Below are positions 23,697 to 56,595 of a stretch of 64,000 bases of DNA, one piece after another (position 1 is the first letter of the stretch; each line of letters starts with the position of its first letter). The notes under the pieces are model-generated. The model did no database searches, was not told where the DNA came from, and saw only the letters and a program-made list of their open reading frames with translations. Source of the DNA: Sphyrna mokarran. Lineage: Eukaryota. The stretch covers positions 3,906,001-3,970,000 of the forward strand of contig JAGIQG010000040.1 of the NCBI GenBank assembly GCA_024679065.1, in the 5' to 3' direction. The position numbers were made by a program, and so were the translations under genes.

Positions 23697-26578
23697 ATGC
23701 ACGGATTACCAAAAGGATTGGTTTTTGTCATTTACTATCCCGTGCTTGCAGTGATCGGGATTCCAGGTGAGCATCTTTCATGAAGTATTCGGTACGGAAA
23801 TCATTGTCAATCGCTGCCATTGCTTTCTGATTTCAGCTTATCGCCGTCCTCGTTCCCTGGAAGTGTTTTTTTTTATCATACTGGCACTCACATCCAGCAT
23901 GAACTGTTCATTTCATTGTGACAACTTTCCTTTTTAATCGTATTTTGCAATATAGTCTTTGCATTTGAAGAAATAAAAATATTCTATTTAATACTCCATT
24001 TCACCAATTTAATTTATGGAAAGGCTGTTGCGACTCAAGTTGTTCCTCAGGGATCAGTGCTGTGACCTTTGCTGTTTGTAATATATGCAAATGATTTGGA
24101 GAATAATATAACTTGTTTGATTCGTATGTATGTGGGCATCACAAAGATTAGTGGAATTGCGATAACAATGATGACTGTCAGGGGATACAACAGGGAATAA
24201 ATCGGTTTGAGACTTTCGCAGAGAGATGGCAGATGGAGTTTAATCTGGATAAATGTGGCGTAATTGATTTTGGAAGGTCTAATACAGATAGAAAATGTAA
24301 AGTACATGGTAGAACCTTTAAGAGTATCGATAGAAAGAGAGATTTGGGTGTAGAGATACACAAGTTACCGAAAATGGAAACGCGGGTAGAGAAGGTAGTC
24401 AAGAGGGCTTGCCTTCATCAGCCGGGGCATTGAGTGTAAAATTCGCAAGTCATATTGCAGTTTTGTAGAACCTTAGTTAGGCTGCACTAGGAATCTAGTG
24501 TCTCTTTCTGGTCGCCACACTGGCAGAGGATTTGGAGATTTGAAGAGGGTCCTTTATTCCTTTCATTTCCTTGCATGATTGCTAGATCTGCTTCTTTTTA
24601 ACGGTGCTATTTCTTTCCTTTATCATAACTTATTCCCATTTCTGGTTTCAGTTTTATACTTTGACAATACATAACGTTTATGTGACCACAAAGTTGGAAA
24701 ATCTTTCCCAGTTACATGAGTCATATCTCATTTTCTGCGCCCTTCTGTTCAGCGATATGATTATTAGAGGGGAAGTGTCGCAATATCACCAAACTGCATA
24801 TGCATTTCTAATGTTTAACTAGCGATGTTATCTTGTATCATCACTCAATTACCATACATGTAATAAATTATAGACACAGCCAGTGCATTATTTTATTTAT
24901 GCTTATTCGCATTGAGTTGGAATATGAACAGTTGAATCTCTTGAATCTGTGTGGCATATCATTTCATAGCTCCTCTGTTTATCGGCTGAGAAAATATATG
25001 CATCCTGCGCGGTGTATAATTATCTCAGTGGTGAAATACGTTTTGAAAACCATGCCGTTTCACTCTGAAGAGATAGACGCCCAATTCATTTACAATTAAT
25101 ATTTCCAATATGTTGGTAGCTTTTCTTGTTTCCGTAAACCACCACTGTTTTGTCTTCTGATCATTACAGTTTAAGAGTTCCTGGTCACGTACCTTTTGTC
25201 CCAAAATGCTTTTGTGCATTCAAGCGTTTTCCAGGACTAGTTCGCATCGAAAGAATTTAGTATCTATTTCCACAAAACATTTTCTGGTGCCTTTCTGCTC
25301 AATTTACATGTCGCTCTATCATTGTGTTTTCCTTCTTTTTCTCCCCAATATTCCAGCTTATATGTGTTCTGCCTCAGTGGATGCGGAAATAATTTATTGT
25401 ATTTCATTTAACTGAGTCACAAAATATGAAGTTACTTGTTTACTATAGGACCGAACCGGTATTCATCCTAGGAGGACAGAGCAGTATTGTGAATTTATTA
25501 AACATTAGCATCCGTTTTCTCCAATGAAAGCGATAGGTCATAAAACTGAAATTTTGGCTCTGCTTTTAGTTTGCATCTGATATCCAATCTGAATTTTTTT
25601 CAAAAATGTTTGTTCAGCATTCCTTTATCACGATTGCATATTCACTAGATATGTTTCCGACTCATAGCTAATCTCGCGGTAATTGTGATCCTGTCACGAG
25701 GAAGATGTGGTCTCTCCGGATGCATCACCTACTACCTGATGTCCATGGCAGTGACAGATCTCCTGGTCATGATCCTGGCGGTGATAGTAAATCGCATTTT
25801 GGGTGTTTATTTTCCATTCAGTTTCCTCTCAATCACTCCAGTCTTTGCTCTCAGTCTTGTGCTGATATATGGTGTTAGAGATTCTTCTGTCTGGTTAACA
25901 GTCGCTTTCACCTTCGATCGATTTATAGCTATTTGTTGCCAAAGGCTAAAAACAAAATACTGCAAAAAAAAAATTTCAGCTTTGGTGATAGGAACTGTCT
26001 GTTTTGTTCACTGTGCTAAAAAAATTCCCTTGTTCTTTGCTTGTGAACCATCCATTATCATTAACAATATTCCCCGATACTGTAAGTTAACATCAGTATT
26101 TTACACCTCATCTGGATGGATCGCATATGATAGCATAAACGCCATTTTAATACCTTGTCTCCCATTTGTCCTGATATTGATGCTTAATGTTCTAACTGTC
26201 AAGCATATTGTTGCAGCCAGTCGAGCCCGCAGAAGACTCCGAGCCCAGAACATTGCAGAGAGTCAGAATGATCCAGAGATGGAGAAAAGGAAAAAGTCCA
26301 TTATTTTACTATTTGCCATCTCAGCTAGTTTCATCCTATTGTATTTGCTTGCTGTTGTAACTTTCCTTTATGTCCGAATTGCGAGCGTTATTTATTTAGA
26401 AGGTTCAAGTTTCAGCAAATCCAATTATATTCTTGAAGAAAGTGGATTAATGCTGCAACTTTTGAGTTCTTGCATAAATCCATTTATTTATGCGGGGACC
26501 CAACGCAAATTTAGAGATGAGTTAAAGAATGGCGTGAAATATCTATTACGTCCTTTTGTTAACTTATTTAACTTATGA
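23697..26578 (+). CDS. GPR139/GPR142-like class A GPCR, paralog 1 (exon 1 23697-23766, exon 2 25668-26578; 326 aa)
   Basis: Exon 1 MHGLPKGLVFVIYYPVLAVIGIP|gtgag and exon 2 tag|ANLAVIVIL join in frame. Motifs: MAVTDLL (TM2), SVWLTVAFTFDRFIAIC (TM3), CINPFIY (TM7). TATA-like ttatata at ~23640; AATAAA at 26583. Confidence 0.9.
24020..24550 (+). mobile_element. CR1 RT fragment in the intron of GPCR paralog 1
   Basis: PQGSVL.PLLFVIY.NDLE and WQMEFNLDKC motifs. Confidence 0.85.
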
Positions 26579-54020: not shown

Positions 54021-56595
54021 CTATTCACAAAACTGAAGAAAAAACATAACAATTTTGTCCAGTAGATATTTCACGCCATTCCTTAACTCGGCTCTGATTT
54101 TACTCTGGGTCCCAGCATAAATAAATGGGTTAATGCAGGATGACAATAGCACAAGCATATATCCATTTTCTTCAAGTATGAATGCTAATTCACCTAAACC
54201 AGCCCCTGAGAAATATGTAACATTCTCAATTCGGACATAGGCCATAGTTACAAAAAATAACAAGTATAACAAGATGAAATTTCCCGAAATAGCAAAGAGT
54301 AAAATAATGGACTTTTTCCGTTTCTTCATTTCTGTATCACTCTGGTTTTCTGCAGTGTTGTGGTCCCAGAGTCTCCTGCGGGCTCTATTGGCAATTACAA
54401 TATGTCTTACAGTTAGAGAATTAAACAGTAAAATCAGGATGAATGGAAGAATTGGATTCACAATGCAACGCATCAAATCATAAGCAATCCAGAATGAAGT
54501 CGTGTAAAATATTAACTTTACGCTGCAAAACCAGGGCACATTACTAATTATGTACATGGGTTCAAAAATAAAATACAAGAAGATATTTTTAACGCAGCTC
54601 ACTGTGAACACGATTCCGATGACCCACTTTGCCACATTCTCGGTGCAATATTTTATTTTGAGCCTCTGGCAACAAATGGCCACGAATCTATCAAACGTGA
54701 AAGTGACTGTTAGCCAGGCAGAGCTGTCCATGGCTGCAGAAATGACCGCTGTGCGGGCACTGCAAACTGGTGTGACGAACAGGAAACTGGATGGAAAAAA
54801 GATCCCAGGAATCCGATGTAGCATTACGGCAATGGTTATGAACAGGAGATCTGTCGCTGCCATGGACAACAGGTAATGCGTGATACATGAGGACAGACCA
54901 CAACATCTTCGAAACAGGATCACAATCACTGCGATGTTAGCTGCAATAAAGGGAGACAGAGAAATAACAATAATTTGTCAGCGAGAGAATTCCCTCATCA
55001 CAATATAATTGCTATTCAAATGCGACAAGTCAGAGTTGAATGAAAATCGATAATACATCCAAATTAAGACAGAAAAGCTAGATTGACTATTGGAATGACA
55101 AATAATGAAACAATTTTGCAAGCATTGGCTTTGGCACTTTGAAAAAGGCCAACAATAAGTATCAGAGATAGTCCGCTCACAGATTATATGTTAACAGGAA
55201 TCCCCCGGGTAGCTCCATCCACTGAATATCGGCAAAACTATTCACTGTTTGAAAACTATGCAGTGAACTTTTTAAAACTCAACCTCAATAGCAAATAAGT
55301 GGACATTTAACATTGACCTGGACACAGGACACAGTGAAAAGACTGTTTTTTATTTTCCTTGATAAACACCTGGGAACTTGGGCAATATTTAAAAAAACAC
55401 ATCAAATGCGATGTATTCGACCAAATATGTGACTTCTTGCAGTATGGAGATAGGAACATTCTGAAAAGTATCTGAATACTGGGGATGGAATGGAATTCAA
55501 GAATCAACAGTCATGCCAGTTAGAACTATCAGCAGCAGTAGACATGAAACAGGACAGCCTGGTTGAAACATTGAGTGTTAGTGGCTAAGAGCAGTTACAC
55601 TTTCCTCTGAGAAAAGGATGAATGCCAATCATTCGCGAAATCTTAGCTGCTTGCATTGCTCACTTAATCTGTCGACATTTCTGCTCTTAATTATACTGGA
55701 ACCATTTGGTGCATTTATTCGGTCACTTTGCAACGGTTTACATTTCTCAATCAATGCTTAATCGGCGCACCAGTTTCGTTTATTTGAATGTAAGCAGTTG
55801 AATAGGCTCACGTTATAACAGTAATAACAATAAACTTCGCTATCATGAACATTGCAAGTAACAGCCGGATTCAGTTTACACTGCGATAACATTTTAGGAA
55901 TTCAGGCAGAAGAGCATGGCCAATACAATTACAATTGGCAAAATAATTTGTTATAATAACACTCAACATCATTTATAATAAATCTGATTAAGAGATCTGA
56001 ATTTCACTTCAACCGTTGCAACAGCTCGAGAAATCAAACTGACTGACTGAAAAACATAATGAAACTGAATTGCCGTTGTGAGATGCTAGTGGTAAAAATG
56101 ATAGGTATTATCATTAACATTATTAAATGTTTGCGATCACAGGAAGGTTATTCTGCAATTTGCAATTCTGCAAAATTCTAACTTACAATTCTACAAAGTT
56201 TGCAAAGAAAACCTGTCGGTCAGGGGGTGAAATTACACTGTTAAACTGGGAGAATGTATTTTTCCATTAGCATCAAGAATTTTGCAACAAATAAAATAAA
56301 TAATAATGTTCAGGTTTTTAAAAAATCTGTTCAAGTAGAAACGTGTTGTTGTAGAGGAGCCGATGCATCAGTTAAATCAGTAAAAGCAAAACTTCGACGG
56401 GAAGGAACAGGATCCATCAAATCAAGGAAGGGATGACATATCTCGAAAATGCCATATTGATATAATGGGATAATCTATGCTGCTAAAAAATGACTAAAGT
56501 AGATAATAAATAACAGAGATTTTACCTGGAACTCCGATAGCTGCTATGACTGGATAATAAATGGCAAACACTAGATCTTTTGGTATTACATGCAT
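54021..56595 (-). CDS. GPR139/GPR142-like class A GPCR, paralog 3 (exon 1 56526-56595, exon 2 54021-54940; 329 aa)
   Basis: MHVIPKDLVFAIYYPVIAAIGVP|gtaaa...cag|ANIAVIVIL joins in frame. Motifs: MAATDLL, VTPVC, SAWLTVTFTFDRFVAIC, CINPFIY. Confidence 0.92.

Follow-up and report, generated by a model that had tools for sequence, protein, structure and literature searches.

The question raised by a 64 kb stretch of the genome of Sphyrna mokarran (contig JAGIQG010000040.1, positions 3,906,001 to 3,970,000; hereafter the window, meaning the whole stretch that was analysed, which is without any N) is what kind of receptors are encoded by three related genes, here called g1, g2 and g3, that are packed together with one relic within 33 kb. 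The reading we favour, with a probability of about 0.8 on the sequence evidence, is that they are three open genes and one relic of a very large, elasmobranch-specific family of class A G-protein-coupled receptors (GPCRs), that this family descends from an orphan lineage to which GPR139 and GPR142 are distant kin, and that it would constitute a ligand-diversified sensor repertoire. A full-text literature search, with subscription journals and supplements outside its scope, found no published description of an elasmobranch GPR139-like expansion. The three genes are thus new members of a family known as automatic RefSeq models, but apparently undescribed. They are ordinary members, and their value lies in the family.

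Gene structures in the window

Three long open reading frames (ORFs) are listed in the window, 25685-26578 on the plus strand and 38593-39582 and 54021-54929 on the minus strand. When the window was scanned for motifs in all six frames, exactly three exon-1 peptides were found to go with them, MHGLPKGLVFVIYYPVLAVIGIP (g1, starting at 23697, +), MHGIPKGLVFAIYYPVIAAIGVP (g2, 41589, -) and MHVIPKDLVFAIYYPVIAAIGVP (g3, 56595, -). Reading of the junctions showed that in each gene the first coding exon comprises 23 codons plus one base and ends before a GT, and that the second exon is preceded by a pyrimidine-rich AG. As a first exon of 70 nt holds 23 codons and one base, the introns are in phase 1. 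They are GT-AG introns of 1901, 2010 and 1585 nt (g1, g2 and g3) and lie within the first transmembrane helix (TM1). In all three genes the split codon G|CT encodes the Ala directly before the TM1 Asn, and the same exon join (...AIGVP-A-NLAVIVIL...) occurs in the RefSeq models P0003 (Heterodontus) and P0018 (Scyliorhinus). The joins in the window were inferred from the junctions; homology searches were run with exon 2, and exon 1 was searched for within the window only.

The exon-2 products of g1, g2 and g3 match the Pfam family 7tm_1 (PF00001) with E values of 6e-19, 7e-24 and 1e-18 and scores of 68.9, 85.2 and 68.1 bits, against a cut-off of 30.5 bits, and the matches cover profile positions 2-260 of 260 (TM1 to TM7). 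Among themselves, the second exons are 60-68% identical in protein and 69-72% in DNA. The original prediction on this DNA had described a shared 70-nt first exon with a phase-1 intron in TM1, a very short N-terminus and conserved intracellular motifs. The junctions of the three genes bear out the first of these, 7 residues precede TM1 in the model of the full-length relative P0003, and the four named motifs, CGLSxCIT.YL, FDRF.AICCQ, EKRK.SI.LLFAIS and NPFIYAGTQ, are common to g1, g2 and g3.

It had also taken all three genes to be intact. This holds for the open frames, the splice sites and exon 1, but only g2 is fully canonical. Intactness was gauged at 128 exon-2 positions that are at least 90% conserved among 82 other core members of the family: g2 deviates at 1/128, and g1 and g3 at 14/128 each, a number reached by 3 of the 82 other members. 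In g1, the conserved TM3 cysteine, which is the usual partner of the cysteine in the second extracellular loop (ECL2), is replaced by Phe (C83F, P0003 numbering), and the conserved ECL2 Trp adjoining the ECL2 cysteine is replaced by Arg (W160R). Despite both changes, the reading frame of g1 is open and its splice sites are good. The gene may encode a receptor that lacks the canonical disulfide, or else be a pseudogene at an early stage. As well as the decayed copy (Table 1), a 14-residue TM5-like scrap is found at 44939-44980 (+), with an E value of 0.028, and is possibly due to chance.

Size, origin and relatives of the family

When g2 exon 2 was used as a query, 1828 database proteins were matched at E<=1e-5 among 7306 candidates, with a Mustelus asterias RefSeq protein of 94% identity at the top; none of the matches is marked as coming from the window itself. 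The best 120 of these 1828 are all from sharks except for one unnamed JGI protein. About 105 of the 120 bear the automatic name 'probable GPR139', and the remaining names are capa-, GPR15-, sex-peptide-, FMRFamide- and TRH (thyrotropin-releasing hormone)-receptor-like, apart from one zinc-finger fusion model; names this inconsistent point to the absence of a close named relative. For g1, 1702 proteins were found at E<=1e-60, none of them more than 73% identical. In an exhaustive HMMER search of 50%-identity representatives, 907 passed E<=1e-3; at the stricter limits of E<=1e-10 and E<=1e-30, 192 and 108 remained. Cluster look-ups contained members from skates and rays (Leucoraja, Hypanus and Narcine). 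The greatly expanded family that had been predicted is therefore confirmed by the g1 and g2 counts, in sharks and batoids alike. One RefSeq protein of Rhincodon typus, P0089 (468 aa), is a fusion of zf-C2H2 and 7tm_1 domains, probably an annotation merge of neighbouring genes.

Outside the elasmobranchs, the closest relatives in the HMMER search are proteins from a salamander (P0229, 33% identity), the coelacanth Latimeria (P0232, 32%) and a teleost (P0248, 31%), with scores of 95-122 bits over this 31-33% range. P0229 as a query matched 25 proteins at E<=1e-10, namely 20 from amphibians, one from a sturgeon and four from elasmobranchs. These comprise 19 other amphibian species at 66-74% identity with one protein per species, the sturgeon at 46% and the elasmobranchs at 32-33%; the 90%-identity cluster of P0229 spans three salamander species.

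Trees were made with IQ-TREE ('quick', 50 rows, with support from the Shimodaira-Hasegawa-like approximate likelihood ratio test, SH-aLRT) and with FastTree (147 rows), which agrees; GPR139 and GPR142 were not among the rows. In the IQ-TREE tree, 32 elasmobranch rows (SH-aLRT 85) stand beside an amphibian and sturgeon clade (100), inside a clade supported at 95, with one long-branched catshark row unresolved and a coelacanth and teleost clade outside. All three hammerhead genes fall in a 20-row 'core' clade (99) that also holds a Narcine ray protein. Within it, g2 groups with two Mustelus proteins (98-99), and g1 and g3 have long end branches (0.43 and 0.44; 0.33-0.44 across both trees) without a close partner. 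The expansion is thus specific to elasmobranchs; in amphibians, each species has the gene listed a single time.

The relation to GPR139 emerges from profile and intermediate-sequence searches. A family profile of 94 sequences, compared with solved structures, places GPR139 first (67.6 bits), followed by the receptors for prolactin-releasing peptide (PrRP, 56.2 bits) and TRH (56.1 bits). GPR139 is also clearly the first match of P0232 (70.4 vs 43.9 bits) and of P0229 (53.2 vs 39.8 bits). The outgroup proteins P0260 and P0257 score 41.6 and 46.8 bits to GPR139, which is not the top match of P0260, and on these scores they were ruled out as GPR139 or GPR142. In the profile alignment, the TM1 stretch over the exon junction (YYxxLxxxGxPAN) pairs with YYSLLLCLGLPANIL of GPR139, DRF-VAIC pairs with DRY-IAVC, and the invariant Asn of the TM5 LN motif pairs with an Asn of GPR139 at the position numbered here as 5.58. 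In most class A receptors Tyr5.58 is expected. A search of the ESM Atlas returned only the family's own clusters and invertebrate peptide-receptor-like clusters, and degenerate exon-1 patterns matched no stretch (0) in metagenome contigs.

GPR139 itself is a two-exon gene, and its human and zebrafish forms share 70% identity, according to the available text of PMC7318219. Its contacts defined by mutagenesis include F3x33, H5x43, W6x48 and N7x38 (from the part of PMC5430874 available), and R6x51 lies in a modelled polar region of its pocket (PMC7318219). The equivalents in g1, g2 and g3 are Y/F/S at 3x33, A/C/C at 5x43, Y/Y/Y at 6x48, A/F/F at 6x51 and L/F/Y at 7x38, so that 1 of 15 residues is kept, the Phe at 3x33 in g2. 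Orphan sets from coelacanth, gar and other fish that stand beside GPR139 and GPR142 have been called GPR210A/B, and the word 'shark' has 0 occurrences in the accessible portion of that source (PMC6504862). The label 'GPR139/142-like' given by the original prediction is right in so far as GPR139 leads the solved structures matched by the family profile, by a modest margin, and wrong if taken to mean orthologs or close paralogs, as identity is 23% and the contacts are not kept. We read the family as neither GPR139 nor GPR142 but as a remote branch of the lineage related to GPR139, and one that evolves fast.

Ligand pocket, selection and alternative explanations

The AlphaFold2 (AF2) model of P0003, made with the family alignment, has seven helices and helix 8 (predicted local distance difference test, pLDDT, 87.2; predicted TM score, pTM, 0.84), with TM1 at residues 8-33 and a beta-hairpin in ECL2 at 149-164. 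Of the residues that represent D2.50, the DRY-type motif and NPxxY, D54, D107 and R108 (P0003 numbering) show no variation, and conservation is at least 90% at N294 and Y298. DRY takes the form D-R-F, and CGLS in the first intracellular loop (ICL1), FDRFVAICCQ in ICL2 and DPEMEKRRKS in ICL3/TM6 are strongly conserved. In TM6, Tyr takes the place of Trp6.48, the residue of most class A receptors, and Pro6.50 is missing.

Variability was measured as column entropy over the 85 core rows of the 94-row alignment. It is lowest in ICL1 (0.41), ICL2 (0.59), TM2 (0.61) and TM1 (0.69), and highest in ECL3 (1.49), TM4 (1.31), helix 8 with the tail (1.21) and ECL2 (1.11). With the termini excluded, the extracellular halves and loops average 1.09 bits vs 0.66 bits on the intracellular side (Mann-Whitney p=1.3e-8). 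The five equivalents of the GPR139 pocket have a mean entropy of 1.78 bits, the TM positions overall one of 0.82. The pocket value is reached by 136 of 100,000 random sets of five TM positions, and by 964 of 100,000 when the sets come from the extracellular halves of the helices only. The equivalents of 5x43 are at the 99th entropy percentile. Overall, the outer halves of TM3 to TM7, together with ECL2 and ECL3, are where the variation is concentrated, above all at these pocket equivalents. These values agree with the diversified ligand pockets that had been proposed from the sequence.

Between g1, g2 and g3, pairwise dN/dS is 0.21-0.35 at a dS of 0.7-1.2; partitioned, dN/dS is 0.22-0.29 in the extracellular half and 0.12-0.23 in the intracellular half. 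These values indicate purifying selection, with looser constraint in the extracellular half, and because dS is this high the three genes are old paralogs rather than recent tandem copies. The dN/dS check suggested at the outset, here run pairwise and partitioned, yielded no value above 1.

Together, these features suggest how the repertoire might work. Exon 1 encodes the 7 residues of the N-terminus together with half of TM1, its first, and exon 2 encodes the remainder; an N-terminus of this length is too short for a binding domain. The members would share one intracellular G-protein-coupling mechanism and would differ in the small ligand that fits the transmembrane pocket, and the repertoire would be kept up by copying in tandem, by the death of some genes and by purifying selection on the others. 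Two operational features of chemoreceptor repertoires are present, a large lineage-specific tandem expansion with a relic and variation concentrated in the ligand pocket. Expression in chemosensory cells is our tentative first choice; leukocytes come second and seem an unlikely site, and other or mixed tissues take the remainder.

Several observations weigh against a ligand-diversified repertoire of this origin. Higher extracellular variability is common to many GPCR families and is no proof of a sensory repertoire, and the mapping of the pocket is one HMM (hidden Markov model) alignment, of the profile to GPR139, which in TM5 may be off by about one residue. dN/dS stays under 1 in the extracellular and the intracellular half alike, in a comparison of three sequences with dS near saturation. 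The apparent link to GPR139 is modest, as it rests on profile and intermediate-sequence searches with a margin of 11 bits. On its own, g2 scores 26.7 bits to human GPR139 (E 3.4e-5), below CCR5 (28.6), NPFFR2 (27.8) and 5-HT1A. A Foldseek search of the PDB yielded generic class A receptors of the peptide type without discriminating between them, and the GPR139 chain 7vug_R came 11th, with 23% identity. Function may be on the way to being lost in g1, with C83F and W160R, and in g3. Finally, in the available text of a paper on catshark sensory organs, no GPCR is among the 50 most olfactory-specific genes and GPR139 is unmentioned (PMC11979771).

The regions upstream of the genes might bear on where they are expressed. 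When the 300 nt upstream of the three start codons were aligned, three-way identity was 29%; exon 1 reaches 71%, the intron 24%. Upstream, peaks lie at -88..-69 (11/20), -128..-109 (10/20) and -28..-1 (10/20). The -88..-69 block consists of TAATTA or TAATTT, then TCCC..GG.G, then a TATA-like run. Across the whole window TCCCNNGGGA is not enriched (14 sites with <=1 mismatch observed vs 17.3 expected), and the only notable point about it is where two of the sites lie, some 70 nt before the start codons of g2 and g3, which may serve as a promoter lead only. The block resembles the pair of a homeodomain site and an O/E (EBF) site that characterises the promoters of odorant receptors; EBF1 is also active in B cells, as a B-lineage factor. 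The 28 nt directly before the ATGs (23669-23696, 41590-41617 and 56596-56623) are conserved too, with a conserved CAG and 10/20 identical positions in -28..-9; they represent either a constrained 5' untranslated region or the acceptor of an unseen upstream non-coding exon.

A bolder version of the sensory reading, which we consider rather doubtful, is that the family is the main odorant-type repertoire of sharks and rays, having arisen independently from a GPR139-related orphan, convergent with the odorant receptors (ORs) and trace amine-associated receptors (TAARs), and that its members would be chosen for expression via OR-style promoters, in which a homeodomain site adjoins an O/E site some 70 nt before the start codon, as in g2 and g3. 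If true, it would account for elasmobranch smell with a handful of classical ORs. The accessible part of PMC11979771 gives the catshark 2 OR genes, 6-7 OR-like genes and about 32 V2R genes, and the shark nose has been termed a de facto vomeronasal organ (PMC10116579, available portion). The terms GPR139, GPCR and orphan have 0 occurrences in the text of PMC10116579. A class A family of well over a thousand non-redundant elasmobranch proteins would be the largest receptor family of these animals and, if sensory, would change the picture of vertebrate chemoreceptor evolution.

Other origins and uses of the genes can be weighed against the same evidence. That they are duplicated co-orthologs of GPR139 and GPR142 that still sense the aromatic amino acids Trp and Phe is suggested by the NCBI name 'probable GPR139' of most relatives (about 105 of the best 120), by the first place of GPR139 among the solved matches of the family profile, and by two-exon genes on both sides (PMC7318219, available text). 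An identity of 23%, where human and zebrafish GPR139 share 70% (PMC7318219), makes this very improbable, as do the loss of all contact residues but the Phe at 3x33 of g2 and the capa-, GPR15-, sex-peptide-, FMRFamide- and TRH-receptor-like names of other relatives; true orthology to GPR139 or GPR142 was rejected on identity and lost agonist contacts and is largely refuted. Divergent classical ORs are barely conceivable. The ICL2 sequence FDRFVAIC does resemble the OR motif MAYDRYVAIC, and a short N-terminus, tandem arrays and T-cell receptor (TCR) V neighbours are found with mammalian ORs as well. However, the 60 solved chains that best match the family profile include no OR and are led by GPR139 and peptide receptors, the TM6 and TM7 motifs of ORs are absent as far as seen without a dedicated motif scan, and the coding intron in TM1 is at odds with the intronless coding region of ORs. 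Classical ORs were rejected on the solved chains and this intron.

Two further explanations concern function rather than ancestry. The genes could form an immune-cell repertoire, for instance of chemoattractant-like lymphocyte receptors, with shared regulation behind their location near V segments. Four V-like segments with 23-spacer recombination signal sequences (RSSs) lie in the window, the nearest 9.5 kb from g1, and the upstream motif is EBF-like, which would suit a B-lineage factor. Co-location alone is a weak argument, however, as OR genes are neighbours of the TCR alpha/delta locus in mammals too and are not known to serve immunity there, and the size of the family and the diversification of its pocket fit chemoreceptors at least equally well; we regard an immune repertoire as unlikely. 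If it were the case, the embedding among antigen-receptor V segments would gain in interest. Alternatively, the array might be a largely neutral by-product of a duplication-prone region, with many copies, including g1 and g3, decaying without individual function. The relic at 46370-46583, the long branches of g1 and g3 (0.33-0.44) with their 14/128 deviations each, and the absence from g1 of both the TM3 cysteine and any ortholog above 73% identity would fit this. Against it, the ORFs, splice sites and exon 1 of all three genes are open despite a dS of 0.7-1.2, a dN/dS of 0.21-0.35 implies long-term constraint, and g2 is 94% identical to a Mustelus protein with 1/128 deviations. Neutrality of this kind therefore seems distinctly improbable. 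The ligand-diversified repertoire is the reading we retain, and whether sensory or immune, a diversified branch of the GPR139 lineage could help in finding natural ligands.

Neighbouring features and comparison with known systems

The features of the window are collected in Table 1. The four V-like segments with 23-spacer RSSs occupy 5.2-14.1 kb of the window. The V-set domain of the complete segment is recognised by Pfam (E 4.5e-15), and its heptamer-23-nonamer is perfect, with 0 expected in shuffles. Its matches among solved structures are a mix of TCR alpha, TCR delta and immunoglobulin (Ig) light-chain domains. The three further segments are 27-32% identical to it, and their RSS-like sites have 1-2 mismatches. 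These V segments are context, and no evidence for immune function. Reverse-transcriptase fragments flank and separate the receptor genes, in keeping with the retroelement-rich surroundings described in the original prediction.

Table 1. Receptor genes, upstream blocks and neighbouring features in the window, in order of position
Feature	Position	Strand	Remarks
V-like segment	5230-5543	-	RSS-like 23-spacer site adjoining
V-like segment	9876-10264	+	RSS-like 23-spacer site adjoining; opposite orientation
Complete V segment	12473-12947	-	Leader exon 12902-12947; V exon ~12514-12818, ends ...DSAVYHCAL; RSS 12473-12511
V-like segment	13810-14138	-	RSS-like 23-spacer site adjoining
RVT_1 fragment	17161-18727	+	Reverse-transcriptase ORF, non-LTR (long terminal repeat) type, partial
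g1 upstream block	23620-23649	+	TCCC..GG-type motif, 2 mismatches to TCCCNNGGGA (23620-23629), then TATA-like; ~75-50 nt before ATG
g1 first coding exon	23697-23766	+	70 nt, MHGLPKGLVFVIYYPVLAVIGIP + 1 base; GT donor at 23767
g1 second coding exon	25668-26578	+	In frame 25670-26575, 302 codons, end includes stop; divergent copy
RVT_1 fragment	35852-36571	+	Reverse-transcriptase ORF, non-LTR type, partial
g2 second coding exon	38593-39509	-	In frame 39507-38596, 304 codons; canonical family member
g2 first coding exon	41520-41589	-	70 nt, then GT donor
g2 upstream block	41637-41675	-	TAATTA and TCCCNNGGGA with 1 mismatch (the pair at 41656-41675), then TATA-like
Decayed fourth copy	46370-46583	-	TM6 end, TM7 and helix 8 remain; in-frame stop and frameshift; between g2 and g3
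g3 second coding exon	54021-54940	-	In frame 54938-54024, 305 codons; divergent copy
g3 first coding exon	56526-56595	-	70 nt, then GT donor
g3 upstream block	56643-56683	-	TAATTT and the window's only exact TCCCNNGGGA (the pair at 56664-56683), then TATA-like
RVT_1 fragment	59174-60124	-	Reverse-transcriptase ORF, non-LTR type, partial
RVT_1 fragment	62722-63270	+	Reverse-transcriptase ORF, non-LTR type, partial

Compared with known systems, the family stands nearest to the amphibian and sturgeon orphan group of P0229, automatically named 'probable GPR139', with which it shares DPEM..RRRSI.LL and AFTFDR and a joint clade at 95; amphibians have one protein per species, whereas elasmobranchs have massively diversified theirs. 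GPR139 and its paralog GPR142 are vertebrate class A receptors that are orphan or activated by aromatic amino acids. GPR139 is likewise described as having two exons, its TM1 and ICL2 stretches are similar, and the positions at which it binds agonists are those that vary in the family. The family differs from GPR139 in that it has Tyr for W6.48, is without P6.50 and does not keep R6x51. Identity is about 23%, the N-terminus has 7 residues, and hundreds to thousands of database proteins stand against a single-copy GPR139. The OR and TAAR families are alike in their large tandem arrays, relics, conserved G-protein side with a variable pocket, and very short N-terminus. They differ from the elasmobranch family, which is set apart by its GPR139-related lineage and by the coding intron in TM1.

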